A DNA stretch of 64,000 nucleotides from Octopus bimaculoides (lineage: Eukaryota): contig NC_069000.1 in the NCBI RefSeq assembly GCF_001194135.2, forward strand, positions 33,708,032 through 33,772,031. The letters run 5' to 3'. Position numbers and translations under genes: made by a program. The notes below the pieces were generated by a model, which did no database searches, was not told the origin of the DNA, and saw nothing but the letters and a program-made list of their open reading frames with translations. This document shows positions 1,588 through 50,091 of this stretch, piece by piece. Position 1 is the stretch's first letter, and each line of letters begins with the position of its first letter.

Positions 1588-1689
1588 CTTTACCAAATAA
1601 TTTACTCTCTTTACCTCCTGAAACTTATACAGCTTAGAATCAAATTTTTCAAATTCTCTCTCCAATTTCTCTTCACTTTGCTACTTTGC
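1588..1689 (-). pseudogene. Stefin copy D, exon 2 with premature stop (5'-truncated pseudogene)
   Basis: Translates AK*QSEEKLEREFEKFDSKLYKFQEVKRVNYLVK with intact ttccag| and |gtaact sites. TAG at 1681-1683 replaces CAG. Flanking intron sequence (about 940-1990) aligns with A and B. No exon 1 was found between 1690 and 5115; exon 3 would lie left of the window. Confidence 0.82.
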
Positions 1690-1888
1690 CTGGAAGCTAA
1701 TGCTAATATTTATAATAGAATGACAAAGAAAATAGTTACATTGATGATATCATAAAAATGGCACAAATATAATACAACTAGGTTAGCTATGGAACGTTAT
1801 GGCGCTGCTTATTTAGCATCGCTGATTCAATTCTTACTTCTTTCACATCAGACATTTTAATGTTTCTCTCGTTCTCTCGTTTCTGCCA

Positions 1889-1921
<33 letters not shown>

Positions 1922-5068: not shown

Positions 5069-5115
5069 CCAAAAATGACATTTCTAGACATAAATTACAT
5101 TACAAGATGTTCCAT

Positions 5116-5244
5116 CTAAAAAGGTTCCAAGGGGGAATCAAGCGTCACATGATCTTTTACAGCAACCACTTGCAAGGGTAGAGGGGGAAGATAAGGCAGT
5201 TGATAGATCATTATATGAATACATATTTCTGTTCCAACCTGAAT
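5116..5244 (-). CDS. Stefin A exon 3
   Basis: Acceptor ttttattttacag|ATT; ends CCT TTT TAG followed by ATGGAACATCTTGTAA as in gene C. Confidence 0.87.
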   Translation of the reverse strand: MQVGTEICIHIMIYQLPYLPPLPLQVVAVKDHVTLDSPLEPF

Positions 5245-5485
5245 CTGTAAAATAAAAGTAAACACTTGAAATAATTATCTAAGATNNNNNNNNNNNNNNN
5301 NNNNNNNNNNNNNNNNNNNNNNNNNNNNNNNNNNNNNNNNNNNNNNNNNNNNNNNNNNNNNNNNNNNNNNNNNNNNNNNNNNNNNNNNNNNNNNNNNNNN
5401 NNNNNNNNNNNNNNNNNNNNNNNNNNNNNNNNNNNNNNNNNNNNNNNNNNNNNNNNNNNNNNNNNNNNNNNNNNNNNNNNNNNNN

Positions 5486-5546
<61 letters not shown>

Positions 5547-8055
5547 CGTGTGTGTTCAGTACTTTCCGTATGTGCTATCTATTATGGTCTTGGTCCAACC
5601 AAAGTCTTGTGAGTGGATTTAGCAGACGAAAACTATGTACAGGCACGGCTATGTGGTTTGCTTCAGAACCACCAGTATTTGAGTCCCGACCCATGCATGG
5701 AAATTTGGCGAAATGCTTTCCACTATAACCACAGGATCATGAAGCCACTATAGCCAGAGAATCATTGTAAGTGAGCCTGGTTCATGGAAACTGAAAGAAA
5801 CCTATCGGATGTAGGAGAGTTTTGTGCATGTACGTATGCGTGCGCACATGTTTATGTGCGTGTGTGTGTATGTGCGTGCTTTTGTGTGTGTGTGTTTACA
5901 TACCGGAAATTGCGTGGTACAATTAGTAACCCTCAGTTCATTTCTGTCAAAAAGCATCCTCTGGATTGAAACATGCATGTAAGTATGTATCTTTGTATGT
6001 ATGTACGTATGCATTCCTACATATGTACTATGTATGTGTGTGTATATAATATATATAAGTACATTTAACAAAAATTCTATCAAATGACGTGTGTATAAAC
6101 AAATGTATTGAAACAAATACGGAAACCAATCACAGTTTAATTATCAAGAGCTTCTAAATATACAATGTTTTGGGTGTTCTTTAATTGGTGTATACATGAA
6201 AAGACTTGGGGACTTCTAGCTCGCGAACATCCTACATATAATTTCCCATGAGTGAAGCAAGATTGAGATGTGCTTATTGACATAGCGAAACTAAGTTTCA
6301 CTGAGAAATGGAATCGTTTAAATTCAAGGGGAAGGTCATATGGGATTAACGGGATCCGTGGAATGAAGACATCCTCACCCTTATAGATCCCAGTCATTAT
6401 TGTTGCCTCTAGGACTTGGGGTAGCATTGCTTTCACCACCAGTCTGGTAGCATTGCACAGACAAGGCGACTCCAGATTCCTGAGCAGCATGATTGGGGCC
6501 CCATTTTTATGTGTTAACTTGTGAGGTAGCATCCCAAACTCAGTTGGAAAAACTATACCCTGGTCCTGATCAATGACAGTGTCGAGGAAACTGAAAGACT
6601 GTTCTTGTCCGGGCTACAGCTGCAAGAGATATCAGTGATTTTGTTTACAGCATCATTACGTGGAGCTAAGATGGCTCGCTCACAGAGCCATTAGCTGTTT
6701 GTAAAGTTTTGTGCAATGTTTGGGAGCACATGCATTATGAGATCATTGGCAGTTGGTACCATCTCACCGCAGGCTTTCTGCCCCCCACCCCCACCCCGAA
6801 TTTGGATATTTCTTAATGAAATTTTCTACGATGTTTTATGTCATGCAGATTCCGAATATACAAAATTTAGGGAGAATAAGTGTTTTAGGAGGGGGTGAGG
6901 AGGATTTCCGGAAAATTCACCGGAGACCACTTCAATTCGTCTTAACTTTCAGGAGAATGGATATTTTTTTAATGAAATTGTCTACAAATATACCTCGGAC
7001 TATGCTCACTTTATATTTATAGAATGTAGCATTAAGAAAGTCATCCATATCTATAAACCCTTAAAATTACTCAAACAATTGTAATGCCATTTGCAATGCT
7101 AGTCCTTTAATTACAGGTTACTTTGCTAAGGACTTTTAATGAATTGCAGAAAACTGAGACCAATTGAATCCATCTTCTTTGTTTGTGCTGCAGACCTACA
7201 GTCAGATTTCTGAGAATGGAACTGACAGACTGCAAAATAAATGCTCTATAACCAACACCTACATGACAGGAAGATTTGATGGCTGCCAAAGTCTTGATAG
7301 AAAACAGTTGCCCTAAGTGTTGCCCAGTGGAACTAAACCGAAAGTCAGGTGTTTGGGAAGAAAGCATCTTAACCACAGAGCCGGACGGACAGACAAACGG
7401 AGGAATGGATGGATGAAAAACCAGATGTAAAATGAATGAAGAAAAGACTGTTAAGGCTGCAAAAGTAAAAATTAAAATAAGACAAGTCAACCAAATATAA
7501 ATAATTATGGAATAAATATATAACATACATAACAACAATTACCTTTACCAAATATTGTACTCCATTTACTATCTCGCATCTGTACAGCTTAGTTTCAAAT
7601 TTTTCAAAGTTTCTCTTTACTTTGTCTTCAATTTGCTGCTTTACCTGAAAGCAAATGGTAATATTTACAATTTTATGCTTTCTCATTGATGTATCTATAC
7701 GAACAGGTGACAACGTTTCCCTAAAAGAAATGGAAAAACTTTCAAAATACAAAGACCTGGAAATAGAGGTAACTCGAATGTGGAATCTAAAAACGGAAAC
7801 AATTCCTATCATAGTAGGCGCATTAGGTATGATAAAAAAAATATTGAGACAAATACATAACAAAAACACCAGGACTTACAAATATATACAACATACAGAA
7901 AATTGCACTACTGGACACTGCACACATCCTACGCAAAACACTTTCAATACAGTAACCATAAGAGCACCACAGCAAACCACAGCACATACCCAAGGCGCAC
8001 AGAGCTGCGCTCGGTAGTGAAGTGAAAGCACGTTATAAAAATAAAACTACTGAAC

Positions 8056-8098
<43 letters not shown>

Positions 8099-8910
8099 NN
8101 NNNNNNNNNNNNNNNNNNNNNNNNNNNNNNNNNNNNNNNNNNNNNNNNNNNNNNNNNNNNNNNNNNNNNNNNNNNNNNNNNNNNNNNNNNNNNNNNNNNN
8201 NNNNNNNNNNNNNNNNNNNNNNNNNNNNNNNNNNNNNNNNNNNNNNNNNNNNNNNNNNNNNNNNNNNNNNNNNNNNNNNNNNNNNNNNNNNNNNNNNNNN
8301 NNNNNNNNNNNNNNNNNNNNNNNNNNNNNNNNNNNNNNNNNNNNNNNNNNNNNNNNNNNNNNNNNNNNNNNNNNNNNNNNNNNNNNNNNNNNNNNNNNNN
8401 NNNNNNNNNNNNNNNNNNNNNNNNNNNNNNNNNNNNNNNNNNNNNNNNNNNNNNNNNNNNNNNNNNNNNNNNNNNNNNNNNNNNNNNNNNNNNNNNNNNN
8501 NNNNNNNNNNNNNNNNNNNNNNNNNNNNNNNNNNNNNNNNNNNNNNNNNNNNNNNNNNNNNNNNNNNNNNNNNNNNNNNNNNNNNNNNNNNNNNNNNNNN
8601 NNNNNNNNNNNCCTGGAAATAGAGATAACTCGAATGTGGAATCTAAAAGCAGAAACAATTCCTATCATAGTAGGTGCCTTAGGTATAATAAAAAAATATT
8701 CAGACAAATACATAACAAAAACACCAGGACTTACAAATATATATAACATACAGAAAATTGCACTACTGGGTACTGCACACATCCTACGCAAAACACTTTC
8801 AATACAGTAACCATAAGAGCACCACAGCAAACCACAGCACATACCCAAGGCGCACAGAGCTGCGCTCGGTAGTGAAGTGAAAGCACGTTATAAAAATAAA
8901 ACTACTGAAC

Positions 8911-8956
<46 letters not shown>

Positions 8957-10251
8957 TCTTTTATTGGCCACAAGGGCCGAACACAAAATAAATAGGGACA
9001 ATACAATACAAGGGACAAGTGGGGGTGTTGAACAATGTCTCTATACAGCAAGTAACAAAAAGAAAATAACAAAACAATTTAACAATAAAAATTCCCCAAA
9101 AGGGGGAGTTCTTCACAGGGACAACAGTAGAACCCCACATAACTTGGTTATTCCGACCGCCACGAAAGTTCATTCCCGCAGGCCATCCTTGCCAAATACA
9201 CCCACCTCTCAGCAAACTTACTCGGGCCGGAACTTCTCTTTCTACCCTCACTTTCCTTTTCAAGTAAAACTTGAAAAGTCGATGAGGGCTTGGCCGAAGG
9301 GGTAAGTATCCGTCTTCAAACCTTTCGTCTCGTTTACCATACTTTAGTAGAAAGTGGGTTATACATCTTTAGATTGTATACCTGACTTTCTACTATAAAA
9401 TTGAAGAAATAGACGGAACGCTGAACTCCAGACTAAACAACTCAAACAACATTTATTTAGGTGATAAACATACATATCTTTTAGTTATACATCTTTAGAG
9501 GTGAGAATAACGAGCTGTCAAGTATAAGACCGAAAGATATAGGGACAGCTTTTAAACACACGTCCATGCTCAATCGCTGGCCAGCGAGAAAGAGAATGAA
9601 TTGAGCGGGAGACGCTTGCTTGTTTAATTTTACGCATGCGTAAGACTATGCATGCGCAGGCGTTACTACAATACTATCTCCTTCGCCATATCCACCAGTC
9701 AGAGGAAAATTGCCTTTCCTTCCCGGTCAAAGGAAGGCGGAGAGGCGATAATAGGATCCGTCCTACACGCGATAATAGCTGTTCGACAAAGCTCCACTAG
9801 TCAGTAATACACGGACACTGAACGAGTGCATGCAAGACAGTTTCATCATCCTGCGCACACCTCAGACATTCCCTTCATCAAATTGACATTGCCCCTCCAG
9901 GTGCATAGTATGCCAATGTTAGACGTTAACGTGATCGCAGATCAACGTGAAATGAAGTGTCTTGCTCAAGAATACAACGCATCGTTCAGTCCACAATCTC
10001 ACTAAATCGGAATAAAACAGAAATAAAGAGAACAAAAACACAACAAAATGTTTTCTTTCTTTTAAAAGACGGAGTGGTCATATATGGCCTATCAATGCAA
10101 ACCTAGGAAAATTAAACATGACTATTTACGATGAAATATAATTAATGAAAATAAAATTTTAAAAAGATCTCACCTTGTCGCACATGATTTGAATTTCATC
10201 GGTAGCAACTTTTGGAAGTGTCCATCCACCATGTATTATGTTTTCTACCAT
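5116..10251 (-). CDS. Stefin gene A: divergent type-1 cystatin, join(10174-10251,7543-7644,5116-5244), 102 aa
   Basis: MVENIIHGGWTLPKVATDEIQIMCDK|VKQQIEDKVKRNFEKFETKLYRCEIVNGVQYLVK|IQVGTEICIHIMIYQLPYLPPLPLQVVAVKDHVTLDSPLEPF*. All splice sites are GT-AG, phase 0 and collinear with gene C. QxVxG is replaced by EIVNG. Confidence 0.86.
6130..6620 (-). mobile_element. Helitron helicase (PIF1-like) C-terminal fragment in intron 2 of gene A
   Basis: GAPIMLLRNL...LCNATRLVV...GEDVFIPRIPLIP...KLSFAMSI...FTHGKLYVGCSR matches Helitron Rep-Hel helicase motifs. Confidence 0.85.
7543..7644 (-). CDS. Stefin A exon 2 (EIVNG loop)
   Basis: Acceptor tttgctttcag|GTA, donor AAG|gtaatt; 102 nt; lies inside the provided ORF 7369-7869. 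Confidence 0.9.
7680..8098 (+). mobile_element. Dong/R4-like LINE 3' end with (TAA)n tail
   Basis: FLIDVSI...KLSKYKDLEIEVTRMWNLKTETIPIIVGALG is a restriction-like endonuclease C-terminus; ends in (TAA)n. Confidence 0.8.
8612..8952 (+). mobile_element. Second Dong/R4-like LINE 3' end with (TAA)n tail
   Basis: Near-identical to 7756-8098 but with several substitutions; ends in (TAA)n. Confidence 0.8.
8953..9305 (-). mobile_element. Probable L1/Tx1-like LINE 3' end
   Basis: Minus strand reads ALIDFFKFYLKRKVRVERE and, after a frameshift, PSKFAERW. It has AATAAA just before the (TTA)n tract. Confidence 0.55.
9344..9670 (-). mobile_element. Probable solo LTR in intron 1 of gene A
   Basis: Flanked by a 5-bp direct repeat ATACT (9339-9343 and 9671-9675); imperfect terminal inverted repeat t-tagtag / ttactaca; internal AATAAA on the minus strand. 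Confidence 0.5.
10174..10251 (-). CDS. Stefin A exon 1 (MVENIIHGGWTLPKVATDEIQIMCDK)
   Basis: ATG at 10251; donor AAG|gtgaga; upstream sequence aligns with that of gene C. Confidence 0.87.
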
Positions 10252-12270
10252 GATAAATCAGGAAAAGAGTCAGCAGATTCACTGATTAACAAGGAAGTAG
10301 CCTCAAGCCTGTTAGTGTAGTTCTCTATAAACTAGTGCGCAACGGCAGAGAAAAGTAACAAAAGGAAAAACCTACGGAAGCCGCTACAGGTAGAAATACG
10401 ATATTTTCACCTTCAATGACTTTCCCGGTTCATTTATGATTTATTCTTTTATTCTCTTACTTCCTGCTGTAATTGAACTACGATTGTGCCTTGTCGGGTT
10501 TCGTCGATCAAATGGATCCCATATATATTTTTTCAGCCTAGTACTTAATTTATCAGTTCTTTAACTGAAGCACTGTTTCAGAATGCAAGAAACCAATACA
10601 GGTTGTGAACAGGTGTGGGGAGAAACAAAAAGACAGCAACACATACGCGCATACATAGATTTTAGACAAATGGATAGGTATAGGTATACGAAGGGCTTTC
10701 CATCAGTTTCTGTCTGCCAAATTCACTCACAAGGTATTGATTGACCCAGGGCTATACAAGAAGACACTTGCTCAAAATGTCGCATAATGGGATTGAACTG
10801 GAAACCACTTGGTTGCGAAAGGAACTTCCAATCTTTATTTCACCACCAACCTACCCACCCATTATTGCACTTAATGAACACACCGTATGGTTCAGACCGG
10901 TAATTCCTAGTGATAAAGATTTGAATAAAACATTTTACAAAATTTGACTCTTCGATTCAGTTTACAATTGTATGCATGTGTAATTTATATCTCTTTTACT
11001 CTTTTACTTGTTTCAGTCATTTGACTGCGGCCATGCTGGAGCACCGCCTTTAGTCGAGCAAATCGACCTCGGGACTTTTTCTTTGTAAGCCTAGTACTTA
11101 TTCTATCGGTCTCTTTTTGCCTAACCGCTAAATGACGGGGACATAAACACACCAGCGTCGGTTGTCAAGCAATGCTGGGAGGACAANNNNNNNNNNNNNN
11201 NNNNNNNNNNNNNNNNNNNNNNNNNNNNNNNNNNNNNNNNNNNNNNNNNNNNNNNNNNNNNNNNNNNNNNNNNNNNNNNNNNNNNNNNNNNNNNNNNNNN
11301 NNNNNNNNNNNNNNNNNNNNNNNNNNNNNNNNNNNNNNNNNNNNNNNNNNNNNNNNNNNNNNNNNNNNNNNNNNNNNNNNNNNNNNNNNNNNNNNNNNNN
11401 NNNNNNNNNNNNNNNNNNNNNNNNNNNNNNNNNNNNNNNNNNNNNNNNNNNNNNNNNNNNNNNNNNNNNNNNNNNNNNNNNNNNNNNNNNNNNNNNNNNN
11501 NNNNNNNNNNNNNNNNNNNNNNNNNNNNNNNNNNNNNNNNNNNNNNNNNNNNNNNNNNNNNNNNNNNNNNNNNNNNNNNNNNNNNNNNNNNNNNNNNNNN
11601 NNNNNNNNNNNNNNNNNNNNNNNNNNNNNNNNNNNNNNNNNNNNNNNNNNNNNNNNNNNNNNNNNNNNNNNNNNNNNNNNNNNNNNNNNNNNNNNNNNNN
11701 NNNNNNNNNNNNNNNNNNNNNNNNNNNNNNNNNNNNNNNNNNNNNNNNNNNNNNNNNNNNNNNNNNNNNNNNNNNNNNNNNNNNNNNNNNNNNNNNNNNN
11801 NNNNNNNNNNNNNNNNNNNNNNNNNNNNNNNCAATATGAACCAAAATTAATAAAGTTTAAAATTATAGTATGTAACAATACAAGTCAATACATATTATTT
11901 TAGATTGATACTAACAGAGATACCCGGCGTTGCCCGTGTTACAAGCAATTGAAGAATTAGACTTTTCTGTTATAATTTCTCTAATGAACTGGAATAACTA
12001 TGATTCGATTTTCATCAAAATTGCAGATGAGGGTTCTTTCTCTCTTTACACACCCTAAAAAATTCTAATCATGACACATGCATCCCATACTACTGATCTT
12101 TATGCGCAGATTCCAAAATTCCAGTTTTATGGAACCTGTTAAAAGGATTTTGCTCCTGAAAAATGGAGGTCATGGAGAAGATACATGCCAAGTCACCACA
12201 CAGTGGTACTGAACCCTGGACCATGTGTTTTGGAAGCAAGTTTCTTACCACACAGCCACACCTGCACTTA

Positions 12271-20878: not shown

Positions 20879-20962
20879 ATGGCGAACATAATAATCCCTG
20901 GACTGCCTTTTTGGACTGCTCCGGAACCGGCTACCGATGAGGTTCAACAAATATGCAATGAC
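20879..20962 (+). CDS. Stefin B exon 1
   Basis: ATG at 20879; ATDEVQQICND matches gene A ATDEIQIMCDK; donor GAC|gtgagt. Confidence 0.83.
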
Positions 20963-21374
20963 GTGAGTTTTTTTTTTTTTTAATTCTATTTTCCTTAATT
21001 TCATTTCATTATAATTTGTCTTGTTTAATTTTCGAAAGTTAGCATTGATAGTGCAAATACGACCACTCCGCCTGCTATTATATGAATTGTTTCTGTTTTT
21101 AGGCTCCAGATTTGCCTGAATATTTTTTTTATCATACCTAATGCACCCACTATAATAGGAATTGCTTCTATTTTTAAACTTCAGATTCAAGTTACCTCTA
21201 TTTCCAGATTTTTGTACTTTGAAAGTTTATCTTCGTTATTATTATTTGCCTGAATATTTTTTATCATACCTCAATGTGTCCACTGTGATAGGAATTGTTT
21301 CTGTTTTTAGACTCGACATTCGAGTTACCTCTATTTCCAGATTTTTGTACTTTGAAAGTTTATCTTTGTTGTTG

Positions 21375-24400: not shown

Positions 24401-27400
24401 AGGCTTCATGGTGGTAAATAAACCACCATTATTATTTGTAATTTTGACTTTTGACTGAAAGGCGAGTTGAGTTTACTCAAGGCGCTAGGTGAGAGTCACT
24501 CAGGAACATTAATAAAATTGCGAAAACACTATGCCTGGACGCTGAGGAAGCTGGCCTCTTTAAGATAAAGTGCTTCTCATTAAGATAAAGTGCTTCTTGT
24601 GGCTATGAGTTGTTTTAACACTTATTTCTAGCAATACTGGTGCTGACTAGTACTCTTAGTCACTTCAGGGACGTAATACGCACGCGCACGCACACACACA
24701 CACACACACACATATTTGTATGTATGTATACATATTGTATATATATCCCCAAATAAGATCATTCTAAATACACTATCCCTCTCATTCAATTGAGAGAAAT
24801 TTATACACACGATACCCGTAGAATAGCCTCATTAGCTCGTAATCAGCAAGTTCATGAAGGAACTTTTACATTGCCACTTAGACCTTGTACCAAAATTTGA
24901 AACTATTCTTATACTGTGAAAGTTATAAATAATATGCCATTTGTTTCAGCCGTAAATCTTTTATATGAGCGAGTAGATTTTAGCTAATCACCTAAACTGT
25001 TCTAATTAACAAGTTTCAATTTTAAAAAAACCTCAAAAGCAAAGAAAAAATATCAACAACGATAAGACTCCTTTCAATCTTAAAATGAGGAGACTTCATA
25101 GTTTCAGTCTTAAATTTTAATAAATATGATTGCTTGAAAAATGTCAGACTATTGAACTGTAAACTGAATAAGAGGATTAAATAAAATAAATAAATCTATG
25201 AATAATTAAATAAATAAAACACAGAAAATAGATTATTCAAATTGGTCTTGTCTGCATCCCCCCCCCCACTTGTTATACATGTCACACTTCTTCCCAAGCA
25301 CACATGTGTCTATTCTGTCATTCAAAAGTCTTCTTTTTCATTCACATCTGTCCTTTTTGTTTCAGGTTATTTAGCATCAATTTCTATATGACGACAACTA
25401 AATCTCCTTACGCAATAAAGATTATTACGTAGACATAACTCCACGCACCTTCTCTTTCCATTTATAATTTATCACTTTCTTGGTTTTATTCTAAAGGGGC
25501 GAATAGTTTCTAATGTGAGGGGATACAGTTCAGAATGGGAAAATATGGCGCAGCTGTTTGTACGCTGACGATTAGGCACGGATGACTGGATATTCACTAT
25601 GGTTTGACAGAGAGTACTTCTTGTCACAGGAAACACACACATACACACACGCACAAACAAACGCTCACATATATATGCGCGTGCGCGTGTGTGTAGAATG
25701 ATTCACATACAGATAGTAATGATGAAAGAGAAAAAAGAAAGAGGAGGTGAGAAGGGAAGAGAGAGAAACTTAAGAATTTATTGATTAAACATTATTCGTA
25801 TAAACATTTTTCCCTCTCCTCATTCACATAGAGAAATATAATTAGACACATAAACCGAGAGAGGGGGGAAATAGAGAGAACGAGAGAAACATTTAAATGT
25901 CTGACATCAAGTAAGTTAGCGTCGAATAAGTGACACCAAATAGGCAGCGCCGTAACGTCCCATAGCTAATACAGTTGTATTATATTTGTACTTTTCTCCT
26001 GACGTTATCAATATAATTATTTTTATTGTTATTTTATTCTAAAACTATAAATATTATCATTGGCTTTGAGAAAAAGCAGGAAATTGAAAACATATTGGGG
26101 AGAAATTCGGAAACATTTGTCGCTCTGCTGCACAGGAGGGAAATTATGTGCGGTTCAACCAATTATGTGGTAAAGGTAACTGTTATGTATCTTTATATAT
26201 TTATTCCATAAATATTTATATTTTATTGATTTGGTTTACTTGTATTTTTTTATTTTTGCAATCTTTTCTTCATTTAACATCTCGTCTTTCATCCATCCAT
26301 TTCTCTGTTCGTCTGTCCGTCCGGCTGCGCTGGTAAAAAGTTTGCTGCCCGACTGCATGGGTTTAGGTTCAGTCCCACAGCGCAGCACTTGGGATAAGGG
26401 TCTTCTACCAAGGATCTAGAACCCACCAGGTCTTCCAAAGACTTAGTAGATGGAAACTGACAAGCAGTTGCTTGTTGTGTAGCATTCATTTTGCTGTTTG
26501 TTCAAATTCATTCTACTGTACAAGTCTGGAAATGCCACAATAATGCAACCAACGATAAAATCGTAAAAGTTCTTCAGAAAATAAGCGGAAATCTTACTAT
26601 TTGGGGAGAAAAATCAATGGATCACATGTCTTTAAACAAAACATCACTGAGGACGAAAATAAGTCAACTAACAATGAAGAGTCAGTATCAATTTACAAAG
26701 ACTAAGTAATGTATTGGAGAAAAAATAACCTTCAGGATGGAGACGGATTCTTCAAATAGCAAAAGAAGTAATAACTTCCCTGATTGAATATATTCAATCA
26801 AATACAAAATGGGACACTTCTGGAAGAAGCAGCTAATGACTAGGAAGTTCGTCTGTTGGAACATGGTAAAAAACAACAAAGCTGACATTTATGAAAAATG
26901 GATGAACATCTAAGTAGATTTTCCTCATAAGTTACAAATAAAAAATATAACTGGAGAACCAGAACAACAACGAAGACTACAGGTGCAAATGTCTTTAATG
27001 AAAATGTATAAGGAAATACAACCTCTTAAATAAAAAGATGAGATTATGAAAACCACTAGGAAAAAATTGATCAACAAATGGAAGAAGAGTGTACCAAAAA
27101 CGCCGAATGTTTGACTTACAAAATATTTTGAAACTTTGGAACGATAAGAAAAATAATTGTGAAATGGTGGAACTCGTGTCCCTCCAATGATGGGCGAGAA
27201 ATGATAATTGGCTCCTACATATTAATGGGGAGTTTAAGAACTCTGGTAGAACAATCATACATAAGCTCAATATATCAAAAGACGAAATTTGACCATATAG
27301 AAAAATCCAGAAAGAATAGGAATGGAAAAGTCACACCAAAAGCCATAACACTAACAATTTATTTCTCCAACAAATTAAATCTCCTGGAACCTGCAAGGAA

Positions 27401-30275: not shown

Positions 30276-30509
30276 CCACTTGACTTTTCATTTATAGAAT
30301 TGTAAGCTTTAATATTTAATCTTATATATTTATTTCAAATGTTTAATTTTAATCTCCAGATACTTATTGGAAGTAAAGAATGTGTTCATGCAATGCTTTC
30401 TCGGATGGAAATTGAATTCAAAACTGACTTTACAGTACGAGCAGTAAAAGCCGACATGACGCGTGCTGACGACTTGAATCCTTTTAGTGATGGAAAATTG
30501 TGTAAATAA
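20879..30509 (+). CDS. Stefin gene B: highly divergent type-1 cystatin, join(20879-20962,26071-26175,30360-30509), 112 aa
   Basis: MANIIIPGLPFWTAPEPATDEVQQICND|KKQEIENILGRNSETFVALLHRREIMCGSTNYVVK|ILIGSKECVHAMLSRMEIEFKTDFTVRAVKADMTRADDLNPFSDGKLCK*. The frame is open, with GT-AG phase-0 introns. The exon 2 acceptor is a weak GAG. Flanks and introns align in reverse complement with genes A, C and D. Confidence 0.8.
21062..21460 (-). mobile_element. Duplicated Dong/R4-like LINE 3' fragments with (AAT)n tract in intron 1 of gene B
   Basis: KLSKYKNLEIEVTRM...TETIPITV; same family as 7680-8098. Confidence 0.7.
21700..22370 (-). mobile_element. Dong/R4-like LINE RT C-terminal fragment
   Basis: KKTRKMTGFRMHHPKSNRERLYIQRIEGDRGLIQLE is a post-RT motif typical of R4/Dong elements. 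Confidence 0.7.
23383..24197. mobile_element. Non-autonomous DNA transposon (MITE) with 24-bp TIR and 8-bp TSD
   Basis: Left end GGATCGTTGTGGTTATCGTCACTG versus reverse-complemented right end GGATCTTTGTGGTTTCCGTCACGG (20/24); flanks TGATTTCC / TGATTTCT. Confidence 0.65.
26071..26175 (+). CDS. Stefin B exon 2 (EIMCGS loop)
   Basis: Acceptor ggctttgag|AAA, donor AAG|gtaact; 105 nt, one codon longer than the paralogs. Confidence 0.83.
27680..28085. repeat. GC-rich interspersed-repeat-like segment, unclassified
   Basis: Abrupt GC-rich island in an AT-rich intron with no supported ORF; family not identifiable by eye. Confidence 0.35.
28400..29720 (+). mobile_element. Penelope-like element RT relic in intron 2 of gene B
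   Basis: Frameshifted motifs LSFDVINLY, TAMGTKVAPTYANL, WKRYLDDC and ELPFL. Confidence 0.75.
30360..30509 (+). CDS. Stefin B exon 3
   Basis: Acceptor ttttaatctccag|ATA; collinear with gene A exon 3 for 42 codons, then 7 extra residues to TAA. Confidence 0.83.
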   Translation: MLIGSKECVHAMLSRMEIEFKTDFTVRAVKADMTRADDLNPFSDGKLCK

Positions 30510-38950: not shown

Positions 38951-40109
38951 GCGGAGGCTTAGTTGCCAACCCAATATACGTATAACAACAGTATCATCCT
39001 GAATATGTTAGTGGCATGGTAATACAGATCATTTCTGAGCTCTGTAGAGAATCTATAGAGCTATGAATTGATCAGGGCTGAAGTATTTCTCGGTTACTAG
39101 AAGACGCTTTTTCTTAAACAATAAAAACGGTGGCTGTCACTCTTTTGCGTTTTATGGAAGGGAAGCGTTTCATAGTTAAAACAGTCCATTTACTGCCATG
39201 GATTGATTCGAAGACAAGCACCACTGGTCGCGTGTGTGCTCACGCAAACACACACACAAAAAACTGTCCTGCCGATTAGCTATAACATACGCAATAGATA
39301 TTTATTAGTTCTTCTAATGATGCAACAACAGCCTCCACTCCACTGAGTTATCTTCTGCATATGTCATAATCTTAGGCACATTCCACACGTGTCTTTCTCA
39401 TCTTTCTGTCACCCTTACTGTGTGTCAATAATCTCTCATATTCACTCTCGACTTTCATTTTTCATACAAATGACTTGGAAATGTTCAAACTATATATCAA
39501 CTACACGAGGTTGCGAAAGCCTACAAAGATTTTTTTCACTAAGTTATAAAAGATAAAATAAAATAAAAAGGCTTATTTGCTTGCTTATTACATTTGGAGA
39601 TACTAAGAGAACATCTACATTATGATTCCTCGTTTGGAGACATGAATTTAAGAGATGTATAACACGTCAGTATCAAACATCGCAACTGAAGGCGCCGTAA
39701 CTGAAAAGATGACTCACAAAAAAGTTGTCTCCTTGATTAAAAGAAATGTACCGTCAGAATGGACCAGAATATAAAATTATTTGGAAAATTACATTTACAA
39801 TAATCAAATGAAATTAACAGTGTTTCAGGTTTTAAAAGGCTAAATTGCGTTTTCCCCGCTTTGTTGAATTTTTATTATTATAGAAAAGTCTTCAATCATG
39901 GATTAAATCAGACAATGGATAAGTTTGTGAAGTACATGCCTTGCCCTACAATACTTACCTATAGTAAGATTTTGCGGCATTCATCAGAGTGCAAATACTG
40001 GGCTAGAAATGGTTACAGAAACAGATTGAGTTAATGAGAAATGAACAAGATCTAGGCCCACATTTCAATTAGTAACTGTACAAAGATCCTGCTGTACTAG
40101 AGTATTGTC

Positions 40110-40490: not shown

Positions 40491-40652
40491 CTCCATTCCA
40501 TATTTTGTACCACTATTCACAAATTGATTGTTAGAAATAAAATCATCTAAAACACAATCAAATATGTAATGCAACTCAAAAATGTAACGATGAGAATGTA
40601 ATTGACAAATAATAATCATTTTATACACTTTTGTTAGATTTAAGAACAATGT

Positions 40653-40658
40653 TTTATT
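40653..40658 (-). promoter_or_regulatory. Polyadenylation signal of stefin C
   Basis: TTTTTGGAATAAA conserved with A and B. Confidence 0.65.
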
Positions 40659-40706
40659 CCAAAAATTACATTTTTAGAAATTAAATTATTTTACAAGATG
40701 TTCCAT

Positions 40707-40826
40707 CTAAAAATATTCTATTTCATCAGCAAGTGCCAAGCTTCCTTTTATTGACGTCAATTCCCCAGCATCAAACAATGGTTTGTAAATTCTTGCATGA
40801 ACAAATTCTTCATTTCCAATATGTAT
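40707..40826 (-). CDS. Stefin C exon 3
   Basis: Acceptor ttctattctacag|ATA; ends TTT TAG; 120 nt. Confidence 0.92.
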   Translation of the reverse strand: MHIGNEEFVHARIYKPLFDAGELTSIKGSLALADEIEYF

Positions 40827-42956
40827 CTGTAGAATAGAAATTGAACATTTGAGATAAATATCTAAGATTTATCATTAAAGTTTACAATTCTATAAATTAG
40901 ACAGAGTAGTTAACTCTTTCTTTCTCTCTCTCTCCCCCCCTATGTACACATGCATGTGCATGTGTTTGCGTGTATGATGTCCCCTGAAAAAAGATCAGCT
41001 GAATGCAGTTTACAAAGTCCTTCCTTTTAGACCAGGCAATTGGTTTAACATGTGTAATATGTGAAAAAGTTTGCAAGGCAATTTCAAATCTGAAAACACA
41101 TACAGCAGTTCACAGAGGTCATATCCTACAAAGTGACACAGTGAATTAATTGTCACATATGTCTCGAACCGGGCAGATCTGCAGATGGACTGAATAGTCA
41201 TCTGAGAGGTCGTGGATGGAAAGTCAAAAATTCCATTGACAACAAGGAGGCACAAGAAAGAAACAATCATGTGAAGATGGAGCAATCACCATGTATGGAC
41301 ATATGTATCTACGAGCAAATGCATGCATGTAAGATGAATGAACCAAGGACTGTTAAGACTTCAAAAATTAAATTACAAATAAACAAAGTTAACAAAATGT
41401 AAACAGCTATGGAGTTTTTTTTTTTTAACGGAACAGCCTGCTCGTGAAATTAACGTGCAAGTGGCTCAGCACTCCACAGACATGTGTACCCTTAACGTAG
41501 TTCTCGGGGATATTCAGCGTGACACAATGTGACAAGGCTGACCCTTTGAATTACAGGCACAACAGAAACAGGAAGTAAGAGTGAGAGAAAGTTGTGGTGA
41601 AAGAGTACAGCAGGGTTCGCCACCATCCGCTGCCGGAGCCTCGTGGAGCTTTAGGTGTTTTCGCTCAATAAACACTCACAACGCCTGGTCTGGGAATTGA
41701 AACCGCAATCCTATGACCGCGAGTCCGCTGTCCTAACCACTGGGCCATTGTGCCTCCACAGCTATGGAGTAAATAAAATACAAAGCAACAATTACCTTTA
41801 CAAAATAATTCATTCCAGATACTAGCTGTTGCTTATAATGCAGAGCTTCAAATTTTTCAAATGTTTTATCCAATTTCTCTTCCATTTTCTGCTTTAACTG
41901 GAAACAAATGGTAATATTTATAGATAATACAATTCTTTCTACTATAGAGAAAAGGCATAAAATTTTGTGGGAAGGGTCTGGTCAATTTCATTGATCCCTC
42001 TGCTCAACTGGTACTTATTATACTGGCCCCAAAAGGATGAAAGGCAAAGTTGATTCTGATGGCATTTGAAACTAGAAGAAATTCTGTTTAGTATTTTGTT
42101 CAGCATGCTAATAATTCTGCCAGATTACTACCTTCATAACATTTTATAATATAGGTGAGACTGTGTGGTAAGAAGCCTGCTTTCCAATCATGTGGTTCCA
42201 TGTTCTGTCTCATTGTGTGACACCTTGGGTAAGTGTCTTCTGTTATAGCCTTGGCCGACCAGAGACTTGTTTGTGGATTTGGTGGATAGAAACTGGAAGA
42301 AGCCTGCCATATTCTTTTCTTTCGTTCTTTCATTTGTTTCAGCTATTTGATTGTGGGCATGCCGGCGCACCACCTTAAAGGATGTTTTAGTCAAAGAAAT
42401 CGATCCCAGGACTTACTCTTTGTAAGCCTAGTACTTATTTTATCAGTCTCTTTTGCCAAACTGCTAAGTTACAAGAACATAAACACACCAGCATTGGTTG
42501 TCAAGCAATTGTGAGAGAAACAAACACAGACACAAAGACACACACACATAATTATATACCTACATCTATACGAGTGGGTGGACAAATGAAAGAATGGCAC
42601 TCAAACCAAAGATGAGTGTGTATTCATTTTTCATGCTTCACCAATTACTTCCATACTTGTGATGCATGAATAATTTGACCTCAGACATATAATAGGGTCC
42701 TCATATTATGACATTTTCTTCTTAAATAAAAAAAAATTTAATGTTCGCTATTTATAAACAACTATGATAAATTACTCAAAGAAATATTTACAAAGTTCAC
42801 AAAGTTAGATATTTCACGTAATATAGTTTTTAACATGCCTTTATTTATACGTTTTTTTTCATCCCATCTTTATCTCATTCATTGTTTGCAATGTTCTCGC
42901 TCGCTCGCTCGCTCGCTCGCACGCACGCACGCACGCACGCACGCGCGCGCGCGCGC

Positions 42957-42997: not shown

Positions 42998-45900
42998 CCA
43001 GGTTTCATTTCGTTTTGAGCTCACACACTTCGTTAATTTACATAAAAAACTTTTATTTATTTTCATTTTGCACGCTGCATTCCGCTCTATGTATTGTAGT
43101 CAGTCACAGATGCACACGTGTGTTTTTCTATATATGTTTGTATACATTTATGTATATTATTTACATTATTCCTCATCCCTTAAATATAGAACTGTACATT
43201 TATGTATGTCTGTGTGAGCGGAGGGGTGTGCTGTCTTGTATACGTACATACATATAGTGGCACTCCATCGGTTACGATGACGAGGGTTCCAGTTGATCCG
43301 ATCAACAGAACAGCCTGCTCGTGAAATTAACGTGCAAGTGGCTGAGTACTCCACAGACACGTGTACCCTTAACATAGTTCTTGGGGAGATTCAGTGTGAC
43401 ACAGAGTGTGACAAGGCTGGCCCTTCAAAATACAGGTACAACAGAAACAGGAAGAAAGAGTGAGAGAAAGTTGTTGTGAAAGAGTACAGTAGGGTTGATC
43501 ACCAACCCCTGCCAGAGCCTCACGGAGCTTTAGGTGTTTTCGCTCAATAAATACTCACAACACCTGGTCTGGGAATCAAAACCACAATCCTATGACCGTG
43601 AGTTCGCTGCCCTAACCACTGGGCCATTGCACCTCCAAGTACATACATANNNNNNNNNNCATATTCTTTTATATGAATGCGAAAGAGAGAGTTGAATAAC
43701 TGTAAGCCTACTTTTGGGACACCTTGTATATATTATATATACATTCTTTTATTCTTTTATTTGTTTCTGGCATTTGACTGCGGCCATGCTGGAGCACTGC
43801 CTTTAGTCGAAGAAATCAACCCCAGGACTTATTCTTTGTAAGCCAAGTACTTATTCTTTCAGTCTCTTTTGCTGAACAGCTAATGCGGTACAACGGTGGT
43901 GCAATGGTATCACTAGTTAATCTCTATACATATCCATCATATTCTGTTAAAATGTCTTATTGATGAGTTTGATTTCTTCATCTCCCTGAAGAGAAGATTA
44001 CATTGTTTTACACCATTTTATTCCTTTGGAATAATACCAGTGATATCTTCGAAACATGTGTTGGAAGTAAAATAATTTGAATAAAACCTGTGTTTAACTC
44101 CATTTATTTATTTATGTCTGGAATATTTCAGACAAACACATTTATCAAAATCTGGGACTGAAAAAATGTAGTCATCTGATTTAAAAGGATGAGTAAACTT
44201 TATGTTGTTGACTGCTTCTGTTCTTTGTTTTGTTTTTTGTTGATTCTTTTTTTTTTTTGTAGATATTTAGTAATGAGAACAGATCATGTGAAACCTACTT
44301 TTCTGACTCATTTAAAAGACTTATGGCTAGAAACAAATGGTAATTGTTTATAACACTCCAAAATACAATAATAAAATAAATTGTGATAATTTGATAAGGA
44401 AAACATGAACATGATATAATTACATGACTGTATTAGATGGTATATATGATGCATCTATTTTTTCTTTTTTTAAGTCTCTCAAAACCCTGGGTCCTATATA
44501 AGTTGGATTGAAGAAGGGTATCAAAGTAGTGATTCTGAAATTCCCAAACAGGAGAATGAAGCAATGAGAGCTTTCTCATAGATATTCCTCTATTTGCAAC
44601 AGAAAGACCAAAGATTTGAACAAAAGAGAAAAACTCCACTGAAAATATTGAAATAAAACAGTTGTATTAGAGTCAAAGTAGTTACAGCTTCATCCTCTTT
44701 AGTATGATGGTTGCATGAATAATAAAAGGAAGAAGATTATATGCTGATGTAGGTCAAAAGAACTCAATTATTTCATGTTAATATCATTAGGAGTAACAAA
44801 GCTGCAGTGATCTCACCTCATCAGCTGACAAAGGAATGTTGTATACAAGTTGTATGTAAAATATTCTAAATATAAATATCATCATCATTGTCATTTAACA
44901 CACATCTTCCTTACTGGGATGGGTTGGAGAACTTAACAGGAACGGTTTACATTGGCATGCTTTTTAAAGCTCGNNNNNNNNNNNNNNNNNNNNNNNNNNN
45001 NNNNNNNNNNNNNNNNNNNNNNNNNNNNNNNNNNNNNNNNNNNNNNNNNNNNNNNNNNNNNNNNNNNNNNNNNCTACTATCTCTCTCCCTCTCTTGTTCT
45101 TCATCCTTTCTGTTTTTCTCTCCAATCCTTTCCTTATTCTTCTTCTCTCCCTTTCAATATTTGCCCCAACAGGTCTTCGCAAGCAGAGTTTAGTGCCCAA
45201 TGAAGTAAAGGTACGAATAAGTGGGCTGGCTACACCCCTGGCAGAGGCTACGGATTATGGTCTCACTTGGCTTGCCGGGTCTTCTCCCGCACAGCATATT
45301 TCCAAAGGTCTCGGTCACTAGTCATTGCTTCGGTAAGGCCTAATGTTCGAAGGTCGTGCTTCACCACCTCATCCAAGGTCATCTTGGGTCTACCTCTTCC
45401 AAAGGTCCCCTCAACCGCTAGGATCTGACACTTTTCACACAGCTATCCTCATCCGTTCTCGCCACATGACCATACCAGCACAATTGTCTCTCTTGTACAC
45501 CACAACTGATGCTTCTTAGGTCTAATTTTTCTCTCAAGGTACTTACACTCTGTCGAGTATGCACACTGACATTACACATCCATCGGAGCATACTGGCTTC
45601 ATTTCTTGCAAGTTTACGCATGTCCTCAGCAGTCATGGCCCATGTTTTACTGCCATGTAGCATGGCTGTTCATACACATGCGTCATAGTCTGCCTTTTAC
45701 TCTGAGTGAGAGGCCCTTTGACACCAGCAGAGGTATGAGCTCTCTGAGCTTTGCCCAGGCTATTCTTATCCTAGCAGCTACACTTTCAGCACACCCTCCC
45801 CCACTCCTGACTTGGTCACCTAGGTAACGGAAGCTATCAACTACTTCTAGTTTTTCTCCCTGGAATGTGGCAGAAGTTGTTCTCTTGCACATTTTCAGTG

Positions 45901-48900
45901 TTTATTGCTCCTGAGCATCTGCCACATACAAAAACTATCTTCCTAGTTAGCCTTCTTTTGATATTGCTGCACCTCTTATGTGTCCATAGCTTACACTGGG
46001 TACATCTTATAGAGTTTCTACCTACGCCTTTTCTACAGGCCCTTCAATTCTAATCCTTGCTTCCACACCTGAAACTTCTCTAGTTTTGATAGTGACTCAG
46101 TAATTAGGGCAAGGTCATCAGCATAGAGGTGTTCCCAGAGGCAACCTGTCTTGAATTCCTGTGTTATTGCTTGGAGGACTATGATAAATAGGAGAGGGCT
46201 GAGGACTGAACCTTGGTCGACCCCTACCTCTACCCAGAATTCTTCACTGTACTCATTGCCAACCCTCACCTTACTGACAGCATCCCTGTACATGGCTTCT
46301 ACAGCTGTAGAAACCTTGTGAAATTAGATGGGACCAGTCTTCAGTCAAACCGTCCAACCCATGCCAGCATGGAAAGTGGACATTAATTGATGATGATGAT
46401 GATGATGATGAATGTGATGTGTATGGTTGAGAATAGCTGTATAAAGGAGTGGCAATCACTAAATGTGGAAGGAACAAGTGGAGCTATAGATCTTGGAACA
46501 CATTAGGACAAAGTAATGAAGACTGACCTCTAGATGTTGAAACTCTCAGAGAAGATGATGGGAGACCGAAACGAATGACATTATGCTGTGCTGAAGAAGA
46601 CCTGTCCATCTCCGCAGAATCAAGGCTCTGTCAAGCCCTCCCCCACAGCTCATCTGACACCCATTCTTCCATCAATCTTTTGTTATCCTATTTTCTTCAC
46701 TTCTCCCTACACTGAACTAATATTTTCTGCATCCAACTCATTCCCCATTTCTAATCATCTGTCACATTATTTTCGCTCACTGTTTTTACCTACATGTCCA
46801 CCTTTTCTGCTCTTCTATCTTATTCTGTCTTTTATTCACGTTGTACCAACACCCCACATCTCTCTCTCTCTCTCTCTCTTTCTCCAGGTAGGCAACCCAT
46901 GTATTCATCACTTCAGCAAGACACCTGCTCCTCTCCCTCTATCCTAGTTCCTTATTCCTCCAGTCTGTACTCCATTCAGTTGAGGGACCTTATTTTGAAG
47001 GTACTTGTCAACCCCACCGGTACTGATGCCATGTAAAAAGCACCAAGTACACTCTGATAAATGGTTGGCATTAGGAAGGGTACCCAACTGTAGAAACTAT
47101 CTTATCTATCTAATCTATCTCACCTTATGTGTCTAATCTAATCCATCTAATCTATAATCTATCTTATCTATCTAATTTATCTCATGTATCTAATCTAATC
47201 TATCTTATCTTATCTATCTAATTTATCTCATGCATTTAATCTAACCTATAATCTTACCTATATAATCTATCTAATTTATATCATCTTATGTATCTAATCT
47301 ATTTAATCTATAATCTATCTTATCTATCTCATCTATCTAATCCCTCTAATCTATTTTATCTGTTTATCTTATCTATCTGTTCTATCCTGTCTATCTCATC
47401 CATCTTAGCTAATTATCACTGTCACTTGTTCAAGAAAAAAAATATCGGTTTCGTCCAGTGGTTTTGAAAGAGTGAAAGAGATAGACAGAAATAGAGAGAG
47501 GGAGGGAAAGAGTAAGAGATAGAGAGGGGAGAGCGAGAAAAAAAGTAATGTGAGGGAGAGAGTATAAGAGTATAGCAGTGTCATTCATTTGTTCTACAAT
47601 TATTTCTCCTAATTTTATCAAATGCCTCTCTCTCTCTCTCTCTCTATCCCCTCTCTCTTTCTACTCCCATCCTCTTCTCTCTCTTACACTTTATTCTTTC
47701 TTTTTCTGTCATCCTCTTCTCTCTCTTACACTCTACTCTCTCTCTCTCCTCTACGGAAATATGTGTAATTACTCGAAGTTAAATGGATTTCTTGCTTTAT
47801 AAAACAAAACAATTGGCCATTGCTGAATCGTAGTTACGGGGACGTATACAAACCAACACCGGTTGTCAACCGGTGGGAGGACAGTCACAAATAAATACAT
47901 ATATATATATATACAGGTAATCTTCCAGTTTAGGGAGGTTAAAAAGTAAATAAAAATCCAAGGGAAATAACTTAACGTCTTACTAGTATTTGGAAGATTA
48001 CCACAAGTTGTTGCGCAGCCAGTACTATGATATTCAATCACGTGTGTGATTTATATATAAACAGTTAACTTCAATCACGTGTGTGATTTATTTAGAAACA
48101 GCTAAAAAAAACAAAAAAAAAACACATTTCAGAGTAGTACGGATAATACTAGTAAGACGTTATTTCCCTTGTATTTTTATTTACTTTTTTTACCTCCCTA
48201 CACTGGAAGATTACCTGTATACACACTTAAATATATACCACAGCTTCTTTCAGTTTCTGTTTACCAAATTCACTCACAAGGCTTTGGTCGGCCCGGGGCT
48301 ATAGCAAAAGGTGTCAAGCAGTGGGACTGAACCTGAAACCATGCGGTTGGCAAGTGAGGTTTTTAATATTACATTTATTAAATCAAATACCGTCGACTTA
48401 TGCTTCCTATATTTTCCTAAAAGGATCAAATCCTTCGGAATTTCTATCCTGGAAATAAGAGGGCCGTTTGTTACCTGGTGGTGAATTGGCGGAATCTCTA
48501 ATGCAGTGGTTCCTAACAGTGGTTCCTAACCCCTTTATTTAAATGAGTTTTCCCACGGACCCCTCTTAACATGCTTGTCATTATGTAATATTTATATACA
48601 TGAAATTTTGAATTTAGTTTACGGATCTCCAGTACTACCTCTGCGGACCCCAGGTTGAAAACTATTACCTTAGTGCGTCTGAAAAAAGTCTCGTCGGAAA
48701 AAATGTCCCGGATCTTTATGTTCTGGTTTCAAATCCTACCGAACCCAATTTCACTCGTATTTCATTATACTAACCCCCTCCCGCCAGGGTTGATAAAATG
48801 AAATCTAATGAAAGTTTTTTTGTTATGTGTGTCCACCTAAAACTTAGAAATTATCGAACGGACAGCCACAAAATTACATATATACATTAACTACATCACC

Positions 48901-50091
48901 GAACAGGTACTGGTAAAAAAATTACCAAAATAAGTATGGGGTCGATTAATTCGACCAAACCCTTCAATGAGGTGCCCCAGGATGGTCACAGTTCAATGAA
49001 TGAAACAAGTAAAAGATAAACAATATTTACAAGATTAATCTATCCAAGAAAGTTCGAGGATTAACAACGGACTGCTGACTAAATTACCACAAAATTTCAC
49101 CTTTTGGGGCAGGATCGTATTCTCCTATATCGGAAACATAGAAATCCGAAAAATTTTGGAAAAATATTAATAAAAAAAACATCGGAAATGGGTGGTGTGC
49201 ACGCGCTTTACCTTCGCCAGAACATCGACTGAATATCTTCTATCAGCTACCTTCGAGGTACAGTTGTTACCGCTGTTTTTGTTTAATTTTGATCATACTA
49301 ACGCCATACCCTTTTATCTATTTCTCTATTTTCCCCGAAGAATCTACACACCCGAAAAATCAGAATTTGTAACGAACTAGATAATTTTAAACTCTACACA
49401 GATGCGGACTACAACTTCGATGGTTTTTAAGGTGATCATTGTTTTTTTGTTTTTTTTAAGGTACATATATACCGCTGCGTAGGCGATCTTTAATAACAAT
49501 AACAGGTTAATGGTTTCGAATTCTGGCACATAGGAGGGTGTATGTTGATTATATCGACAACTGTGTCCAACAGGTATTTATTTTATCGACACCGAAAGGA
49601 TGAAAGGCAAAGTCAACCTAGGCGGAATTTGAACCCAGAACGTAAAAAGCCAGAAGAAATGCTGCTAAGTATTTTGTCCGATTCCCTAACGATTCTACGA
49701 ATAAGAATAAGAAATTCTGCTAGGTATTTTGACTCCCTAACGATTCTACGAGCTTGCCACCTTAATAATCCTAATGATAGGTATACAAGCCAACAAACCA
49801 GAAGCCGTTACGTCGTCGCTCAGATTGATAGAAGAGGTAGTCGAATGCTTCTTCTTAATTCAGATTGAAATAGAGAAATAAAAATTTGTTTGTCCTGCAT
49901 ATACAATGTCTGAAGCAATGATAATAAAAAAACGGGGTGGTTACATCTGTTCGATGAAAATTAGGTAAGAAGGGTAATGATTAAATGAAATTATCGAAAA
50001 TATAAAAAAAATAACTCACTTCATCGCATAATCCTTTAACCTCATCATTAATATCTTTTTTCTCAGACAATCCTCCACACATTGTAGACAT
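40707..50091 (-). CDS. CSTB: Stefin gene C: type-1 cystatin (cystatin A/B-like), join(50020-50091,41796-41897,40707-40826), 97 aa
   Basis: Manual splice gives MSTMCGGLSEKKDINDEVKGLCDE|LKQKMEEKLDKTFEKFEALHYKQQLVSGMNYFVK|IHIGNEEFVHARIYKPLFDAGELTSIKGSLALADEIEYF*. It has the N-terminal Gly, the QxVxG motif (QLVSG), a stefin-type C-terminus and no signal peptide. Both introns are GT-AG, phase 0, at the positions known for vertebrate CSTA/CSTB. The symbol means family-level similarity, not demonstrated one-to-one orthology. Confidence 0.92.
41415..41757 (-). mobile_element. tRNA-derived SINE with poly-A tail and TSD in intron 2 of gene C
   Basis: Head GGCCCAGTGG (A box) and GGTTTCAATTCC (B-box-like); TSD ACAGCTATGGAG at 41403-41414 and 41758-41769. 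Confidence 0.85.
41796..41897 (-). CDS. Stefin C exon 2 (contains QLVSG)
   Basis: Acceptor tttgtttccag|TTA, donor AAG|gtaatt; 102 nt; open. Confidence 0.93.
43255..43640 (-). mobile_element. Second copy of the same tRNA-derived SINE
   Basis: Aligns along its length with 41415-41757. Confidence 0.85.
45130..46330 (-). mobile_element. RTE-clade LINE reverse transcriptase (5'-truncated, frameshifted) in intron 1 of gene C
   Basis: VGVDQGSVLSPLLF...LYADDLAL...FRYLGD...RIRIAWAKLREL...LHGSKTWA. Confidence 0.88.
47100..47410. repeat. Degenerate (TCTA/ATCTT) low-complexity tract
   Basis: Seen directly. Confidence 0.85.
50020..50091 (-). CDS. Stefin C exon 1 (MSTMCGGLSEKKDINDEVKGLCDE)
   Basis: ATG at 50091 (second ATG at 50082); donor GAA|gtgagt; 72 nt. 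Confidence 0.9.

Follow-up and report, generated by a model that had tools for sequence, protein, structure and literature searches.

Human stefin A and stefin B (PDB 1STF, 1DVC and 8GT7) are type-1 cystatins of about 100 residues that have no signal peptide. Mammalian stefin genes have three exons, and multigene families of stefin A are present in pig and cattle. In mouse, a stefin cluster on chromosome 16 comprises 10 genes, including Csta, Stfa1, Stfa2, Stfa3 and Stfa2l1 (PMC2759285). A group of stefin genes is also present in a mollusc, within a 64,000-nucleotide (nt) stretch of the Octopus bimaculoides genome that is termed the window here; its sequence is identical to that of chromosome record CM046620.1 at ∼33.71–33.77 Mb (assembly GCA_001194135.2). 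Four copies lie in the window in the order D(−), A(−), B(+), C(−), of which A, B and C are intact genes and D is a relic. The nearest analogues of this group are the lineage-specific stefin arrays of mammals. As in the mouse cluster, the genes form a lineage-specific tandem array of type-1 cystatins whose copies seem to differ in expression. The octopus array, however, arose independently, and its copies are 31–43% identical in protein sequence, two of them without the canonical Gln, whereas the mouse variants are described as highly similar.

The interpretation that we favour by a small measure is that C is a standard cytosolic inhibitor of papain-like (C1A) peptidases, with A and B as functional paralogs in which the stefin fold is retained but the inhibitory wedge altered. 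The array would have originated by repeated, partly inverted, segmental duplication of a three-exon unit of ∼5–10 kb. C, as the conserved octopod stefin, would block C1A peptidases, cathepsins L, B and H among them, in the classical manner, in which a wedge made up of the N-terminal Gly trunk and two hairpins, the first carrying QxVxG, fills the active-site cleft. A and B, which are transcribed and correctly spliced, have kept the scaffold and rewritten the wedge: Glu replaces the loop-1 Gln in both proteins, and B in addition has Met for Val and an extra loop-1 residue. Their inhibition of the animal's own cysteine cathepsins would be retargeted or weakened, and would take place in a narrower set of tissues than that of C. 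Inhibitory activity, altered specificity and site of action are the parts of this interpretation that we infer.

Gene structure and expression could be observed directly. A, B and C each have three coding exons in phase 0, with GT..AG borders established by translation around the motifs, and they encode proteins of 102 residues (A, minus strand), 112 residues (B, plus strand) and 97 residues (C, minus strand). An earlier note on this DNA, made from its letters alone, had proposed the three-exon phase-0 layout, and the translated exons bear it out; all nine of the peptide motifs it quoted are found on the strands and at the places to which it had assigned them. The three genes had been missed by a program-made list of open reading frames (ORFs) because their exons are short. 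A tblastn comparison of the A, B and C proteins with the window yields one additional piece, which is D. Upstream blocks, intron flanks and 3′ untranslated regions (UTRs) are alignable between the A, B and C copies, and thus point to segmental duplication as their origin.

Splicing of A, B and C was checked with RNA, and all six junctions are confirmed by reads and contigs. The evidence comes from short stretches, namely, for C, a microsatellite-free stretch and, for A and B, single exons with the loose ends of their RNA. In C, the joint 40826>41796 (GT..AG, minus strand) is found in 153, 87 and 173 reads of three raw RNA runs and in one 412-nt contig, and reads ending at 41897 go on with TTCATCGCATAATCCTTTAACCTCATCATT, the reverse complement of the end of C exon 1. 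RNA depth over A is restricted to positions 7543–7646. From exon 2 of this gene, contigs of three runs and 44 raw reads run into the last 30 nt of exon 1, and contigs run into the first 30 nt of exon 3; A exon 3 with its UTR is represented in more than 10 RNA runs. RNA depth over B is restricted to 26067–26175, exon 2 being represented at ∼100–180 per strand in one raw run and by contigs from three runs, and the loose ends match exon 1 (its last 30 nt) and exon 3 (its first 30 nt). Depths per strand within the same raw RNA run are of the same order for the three genes (∼30 for A, ∼100–180 for B and ∼60–120 for C).

The window has a G+C content of 36% and contains 13 runs of N, and near-identical segments flank the gap at 8099–8611. 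A gapped assembly might create apparent paralogs from collapsed or duplicated haplotypes, or misjoin exons across N runs; for the stefin copies this is almost certainly not the case. The N runs 5286–5485 and 8099–8611 are inside A introns, the former 41 nt upstream of exon 3, and the runs 43650–43659 and 44974–45073 are inside C intron 1. The remaining runs are intergenic, and no exon is touched by a gap. Protein identity between copies is only 43% for A–B, 34% for A–C and 31% for B–C, and each copy has its own transcripts linking its own three exons, RNA evidence by which an artefact of assembly is refuted. Exon continuity holds across the gaps because RNA joins the exons on either side. The exons of A, B and C are collinear and in frame, with nothing concealed between them.

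The cluster is not hidden, as the earlier note had described it, in that identical spliced proteins already exist as RefSeq and UniProt entries named cystatin-A5 and cystatin-B-like. Exact-sequence look-up identifies A as XP_014783689.1/A0A0L8G6R1 (‘cystatin-A5 isoform X1’), B as XP_014783688.1/A0A0L8G7F8 (‘cystatin-A5’) and C as XP_052831023.1 (‘cystatin-B-like’). The name cystatin-A5 used by RefSeq derives from the stefin A family of the pig. No paper that deals with cephalopod stefins or with the A–D cluster turned up in literature searches.

Membership of the stefin family (MEROPS I25A) was assessed with profiles, solved structures and models. Against the Pfam Cystatin profile (PF00031, cut-off 22.2 bits), C scores 43.9 bits and A scores 27.0 bits; B obtains no score. 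B is homologous to C (BLASTP E-value 3e-14), and a profile of A and B together retrieves hundreds of stefins. The cystatin fold consists of an N-terminal strand and a long helix that is enclosed by an antiparallel sheet of four or five strands. The fold of B was modelled with AlphaFold from a four-sequence alignment, with a predicted local distance difference test (pLDDT) value of 76.5 and a predicted template modelling score (pTM) of 0.70. It can be superposed on the human stefin B chain of the papain complex (1stf_I) with template modelling (TM) scores of 0.79/0.90 and a root-mean-square deviation of 1.3 Å, and its top matches in the PDB are stefin B, stefin A and other type-1 cystatins, with TM scores of 0.73–0.79. 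The fold of C was assigned by sequence match to solved stefins only, and the match to stefin A and B structures is at E ∼1e-16. A, B and C are therefore stefin-type cystatins, as had been supposed, by virtue of the Pfam scores of C and A, the solved-structure match of C and the superposition of the B model. C appears to have every sequence property of a stefin and A all of them except the Gln of QxVxG; B has the fold, the homology and the trunk Gly, but falls short of the Pfam threshold and lacks QxVxG.

Neither a signal peptide nor an N-terminal hydrophobic stretch is evident in A, B or C, as read directly from the sequences. Their N-termini, MVENIIHGGW (A), MANIIIPGLPFW (B) and MSTMCGG (C), align from residue 1 to cytosolic stefins. 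Because they are without a signal peptide, the three proteins are expected to be cytosolic.

The motif changes are directly visible in the alignments, and the earlier assertion that all three contact segments differ between A, B and C holds for trunk, loop 1 and loop 2. The trunk is MCGG in C, IIHGGW in A and IIIPGLPFW in B, the last with a three-residue insertion; the trunk Gly, whose column shows 93% conservation among 112 stefins, is present in A, B and C alike. Loop 1 is QLVSG in C, EIVNG in A and EIMCG with an extra residue in B. Thus C has QxVxG, whereas A has ExVxG and B has ExMxG plus one residue. At the first position of this loop, 108 of 127 aligned stefins have Gln and only five have Glu, A and B included; Val occupies the third position in 109 of the 127 and Gly the fifth position in 123. 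This loop-1 Gly is kept in both A and B. Loop 2 of A, QLPYLPPLPLQ, is proline-rich and keeps LP, and loop 2 of C, KPLFDAGE, has PL and is three residues shorter than in human stefins. Loop 2 of B, SRMEIEFKTDF, has nothing like the Leu-Pro/Pro-Trp contact. The second hairpin is variable across the stefin family.

Human stefins are likewise about 100 residues long, without a signal peptide and of the same fold, but their protein identity to octopus A, B and C is only 24–38%. The trunk Gly is common to the human proteins and A, B and C, and QxVxG is common to them and C. A and B depart from the human stefins in their ExVxG and ExMxG-plus-one-residue loops and in rewritten second hairpins, and B does so further in the three-residue trunk insertion and in a seven-residue C-terminal tail. 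This tail, SDGKLCK, is present in B because a 1-nt loss in a T run removed the stop codon: the codon common to A (5116–5121) and C (40707–40712) is lost in B (30486–30509), and the frame reads into what is 3′ UTR in the other copies.

D is the remains of a further copy, and ∼800 nt around it align to the exon-2 region of B. No exon 1 or exon 3 belonging to D was found within the window, and D RNA is at zero in four runs that express A and B. With its in-frame TAG, D is a pseudogene, which agrees with the earlier designation. A disabling mutation together with lack of transcription is found in D only, A, B and C having intact frames and spliced RNA. The proposed four-copy cluster is real in that A, B, C and D are all present in the window; it is not the whole family, however, as a fifth O. 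bimaculoides paralog, E (A0A0L8G6I9), is encoded elsewhere. E is a 74-residue partial model with 46% identity to B and 42% identity to A. It has RNSETF, ECVHAML and AVK..M.R.D.L.P in common with B, and its loop 1, CVGGFPG, is different again from those of A and B. E belongs to the A/B-like branch. Since E is outside the window, the array continues beyond the window or elsewhere in the genome, and the family is larger than the window displays.

The whole family is fast-evolving, C included, with ratios of non-synonymous to synonymous divergence (dN/dS) of ∼0.6–1.1. Between A and B, the p-distance is 0.23 in the upstream block vs 0.39 in the coding sequence, and divergence is 0.216 per site in flanking non-coding DNA and 0.375 at non-synonymous sites (Fisher p = 2e-6). 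The non-synonymous difference between these two copies is 0.49 in the wedge and 0.31 in the scaffold (p = 0.008). In the A–C and B–C comparisons, non-synonymous divergence equals non-coding divergence at ∼0.39. The reading frames have nonetheless been maintained. In a neutral simulation with substitutions only, a copy stays free of stop codons by chance in ∼2–3% of cases at the observed divergence (∼0.55 substitutions per site), and the reading frames of A and B are therefore under selection. Of 41 columns conserved across the family (112 other stefins), 35 are retained in A, 32 in B and 36 in C. A–B flank divergence is approximately twice the non-coding divergence between O. bimaculoides and O. 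sinensis; if rates are equal, we infer that the A–B duplication would have preceded the split of these two species.

The positional ortholog of C in O. sinensis is XP_036366649.1, in a collinear region with 86–93% non-coding identity. The two proteins are 79% identical, with dN 0.106 and dS 0.097, and the neighbouring non-coding DNA differs by 7–14%; outside its motifs, C thus changes at approximately the neutral rate. The characterization of C as the conventional inhibitor is therefore apt with respect to its motifs (the conserved Gly and QLVSG), but not if it is taken to mean slow evolution. A protein of Argonauta hians, GAB1601913.1 (cystatin-B-like), is an ortholog of C with 56% identity. 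The O. sinensis and A. hians orthologs keep the trunk MCGG/LCGG, QQ[LI]V[SA]G and the C-terminal EIEYF.

No A/B-like exon is found within 10 kb on either side of the O. sinensis C ortholog, a distance smaller than that between B and C in O. bimaculoides (slightly more than 10 kb). The DNA downstream of the O. sinensis gene consists mostly of repeats. It also includes a stretch with 80% identity to DNA far upstream of A and B, and this stretch looks like a dispersed repeat. A repeat of ∼200–250 bp, whose positions in the window are given below, inflates the apparent ‘upstream homology’ among A, B and O. sinensis. A word-indexed search of 5.8 billion proteins revealed no relatives of A or B outside O. 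bimaculoides. In an exhaustive profile search against 1.84 billion representatives, the matches were ordinary stefins from such groups as fish, sharks, frogs and bivalves, and the sole further A/B-like protein was A0A0L8G6I9. Contigs of four RNA runs with other organism labels contained no match to A exon 2 at 80% identity, which says little since the species in these runs are coded.

With respect to expression, the RNA runs that contain the last exon of A make up approximately the same list as those that contain the last exon of B, and the runs with the last exon of C overlap this list only partly. In the contigs of four runs that contain C, nothing was found of A exon 2, although contigs cannot prove absence of expression. 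This pattern suggests that A and B are expressed more narrowly than C. A separate observation concerns the last exon of C (40600–40826), of which 62% and 76% of 31-mers occur in a metatranscriptome labelled ‘termite gut metagenome’ and in a run with another organism label. These matches probably result from carry-over between samples or from wrong labels in public data.

Functional diversification of A, B and C is plausible because of the open frames, the conserved scaffold, the changed wedge residues and the seemingly different expression. A number of observations weigh against it. The pairwise dN/dS of the paralogs is 0.63–0.77 and reaches ∼1 in the scaffold for A–B and B–C, and that of C and its O. 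sinensis ortholog is 1.1; values near 1 fit relaxed constraint as well as they fit mixed purifying and positive selection. Synonymous divergence is also above flank divergence, and therefore the flanks may be constrained or the loop alignments unreliable. In Tajima's relative rate test with stefin B as outgroup, A and B have about twice the unique changes of C (p = 0.07 and 0.03, respectively), and with stefin A as outgroup the difference is not significant; the idea of A and B as much faster clocks than C is thus only weakly supported. The RNA samples carry codes in place of tissue labels. A single-sequence AlphaFold model of A has the fitting order of helix and strands, but at a pLDDT of 50 it is too weak to use, and B, as described above, has no Pfam score. 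The B intron-1 acceptor is GAG, a weaker site, and B has lost the ancestral stop codon. Furthermore, A has a minor alternative donor at 7529–7542, 14 nt downstream of exon 2, which leads to a frameshifted 75-residue isoform X2 (XP_014783690.1); read depth over this stretch is ∼3.5 vs ∼30 in one raw RNA run.

These features of B, the frameshifting isoform of A and the dN/dS values might signify that relaxed constraint is letting A and B, as redundant duplicates, drift toward the fate of D, with the altered loops reflecting lost inhibition. That a dead copy adjoins them, and that A/B orthologs were not found in the protein sets of other species, would agree with such drift, which we regard as a minority possibility that has to be taken seriously. 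Against it, both frames are intact despite the ∼0.55 substitutions per site, for which the simulated chance is ∼0.02–0.03 each, and at the conserved scaffold positions A and B fall little short of C (35 and 32 vs 36 of 41). In addition, the stefin fold is confidently predicted for B, RNA levels of A and B are similar to or above those of C, and change is concentrated in the wedge instead of being evenly spread. Cystatin-fold proteins without inhibitory motifs are found in nature, such as monellin, cathelin-like domains and CRES-type cystatins. Perhaps A and/or B, and mainly B, have left protease inhibition as well and use the fold as a binding scaffold for another partner. B alters all three contact segments and lengthens loop 1 with the fold retained, and E has yet another loop 1. 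This is quite improbable, however, as A and B still have Gly both in the trunk and in loop 1, A retains xVxG and the LP of loop 2, and no candidate partner or extra domain is visible.

The earlier note had suggested that the derived copies may act, for example, on proteases of pathogens, parasites or prey, an action that would take place outside the cell. There is a general precedent of fast-evolving inhibitor loops in host–parasite systems, and cathepsins B, H and L are abundant in the digestive juice of octopus (PMC11413930). The suggestion is nevertheless without support and very improbable in view of the missing signal peptide in A, B and C and their alignment from residue 1 to cytosolic stefins. 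Digestion in cephalopods depends largely on cysteine cathepsins (PMC11413930), and if A and B are fold-keeping inhibitors with altered wedges, as we favour, co-located inhibitors with different wedges could help to restrain cathepsin proteolysis in different tissues. The array would then also be the second, independent case, besides those of mammals, of stefin genes in tandem that diversify in their binding loops. A further, unlikely proposal is that A, B and E constitute an Octopus-restricted stefin subfamily with a wedge under diversifying selection, driven perhaps by co-evolution with the animal's own, heavily used digestive cathepsins or with cysteine proteases of intracellular parasites. 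If so, A, B and E would parallel, in a mollusc, the fast-evolving stefin A arrays of mammals, each copy with a distinct target spectrum. Viewed more soberly, A, B and C are three automatically annotated, uncharacterised genes of a very well understood family, and represent an ordinary kind of family expansion. The value of their description lies in a cleaner annotation and in a hypothesis testable on a small scale, and not in a new principle.

Stefin gene features in the window (positions are those of the window)
Feature	Position	Strand	Evidence or remarks
A exon 1, coding part (MVENIIHGGWTLPKVATDEIQIMCDK)	10174..10251	−	Donor GTGAGA; overhanging RNA from exon 2 matches the end of exon 1
A exon 2, 34 codons, loop 1 EIVNG	7543..7644	−	Exon-limited RNA depth, three contig runs and one raw run
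A exon 3, coding part and stop, loop 2 QLPYLPPLPLQ	5116..5244	−	Overhanging RNA ahead of 7543 matches the start of exon 3
A upstream block (5′ UTR and promoter-proximal DNA)	10252..10500	−	Three-way alignment with B ∼20630–20878 and C ∼50092–50340
B exon 1, coding part (MANIIIPGLPFWTAPEPATDEVQQICND)	20879..20962	+	Overhanging RNA ahead of exon 2 matches the end of exon 1
B exon 2, 35 codons, loop 1 EIMCG+S, one residue longer	26071..26175	+	Exon-limited RNA depth
B exon 3, coding part and stop, loop 2 SRMEIEFKTDF	30360..30509	+	Alignment of the three 3′ ends; RNA
C exon 1, coding part (MSTMCGGLSEKKDINDEVKGLCDE)	50020..50091	−	Overhanging RNA at 41897 matches the end of exon 1, three raw RNA runs
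C exon 2, canonical loop 1 QLVSG	41796..41897	−	Joint 40826>41796 in RNA
C exon 3, coding part and stop, loop 2 KPLFDAGE	40707..40826	−	Joint 40826>41796 in RNA
D, exon-2-like relic	1588..1689	−	In-frame TAG at 1681–1683; QEVKR replaces QxVxG

Several introns of the array contain repeats. In C intron 2, an interspersed repeat (41430–41760) is situated by exon 2 and has an RNA depth of ∼1,000–1,800 per strand, vs 60–120 on stefin exons. Its reads carry many variant letters and internal joints, and hence come from many genomic copies. The 5′ part of this repeat is tRNA-like by eye (GGCCCAGTGGTTAGG...GGTTTCAATTCCC); ARAGORN and Rfam make no call. In A intron 1, two direct copies that are ∼94% identical (7733–8098 and 8613–8953) are located around the N run 8099–8611, and each ends in (AAT)14. 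They are either a real tandem duplication or an assembly artefact at the gap. B intron 1 has a homologous 133-bp unit twice in tandem at 21110–21370.

The dispersed repeat of ∼200–250 bp is found at 10996–11186, 42327–42548, 51215–51464, 61551–61787 and 63651–63997. Three of these copies abut N runs (at 11187, 51214 and 61550), and several assembly gaps thus fall at copies of this element. Between A and B, ARAGORN predicts a tRNA-Ala(CGC) at 17242–17316 on the minus strand; Rfam gives no tRNA there at its gathering threshold, and the Rfam scan of the window found nothing. This is possibly a tRNA-derived repeat or a degenerate gene. Remnants of mobile elements are present on both sides of the A–B pair. 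A 151-residue ORF at 2060–2515 on the minus strand (RVT_1, 42 bits) is a retrotransposon fragment between D and the 3′ flank of A, and a 205-residue ORF at 38385–39002 on the plus strand, with a Mos1/mariner transposase helix–turn–helix domain (55 bits), is a mariner-type remnant between B and C.

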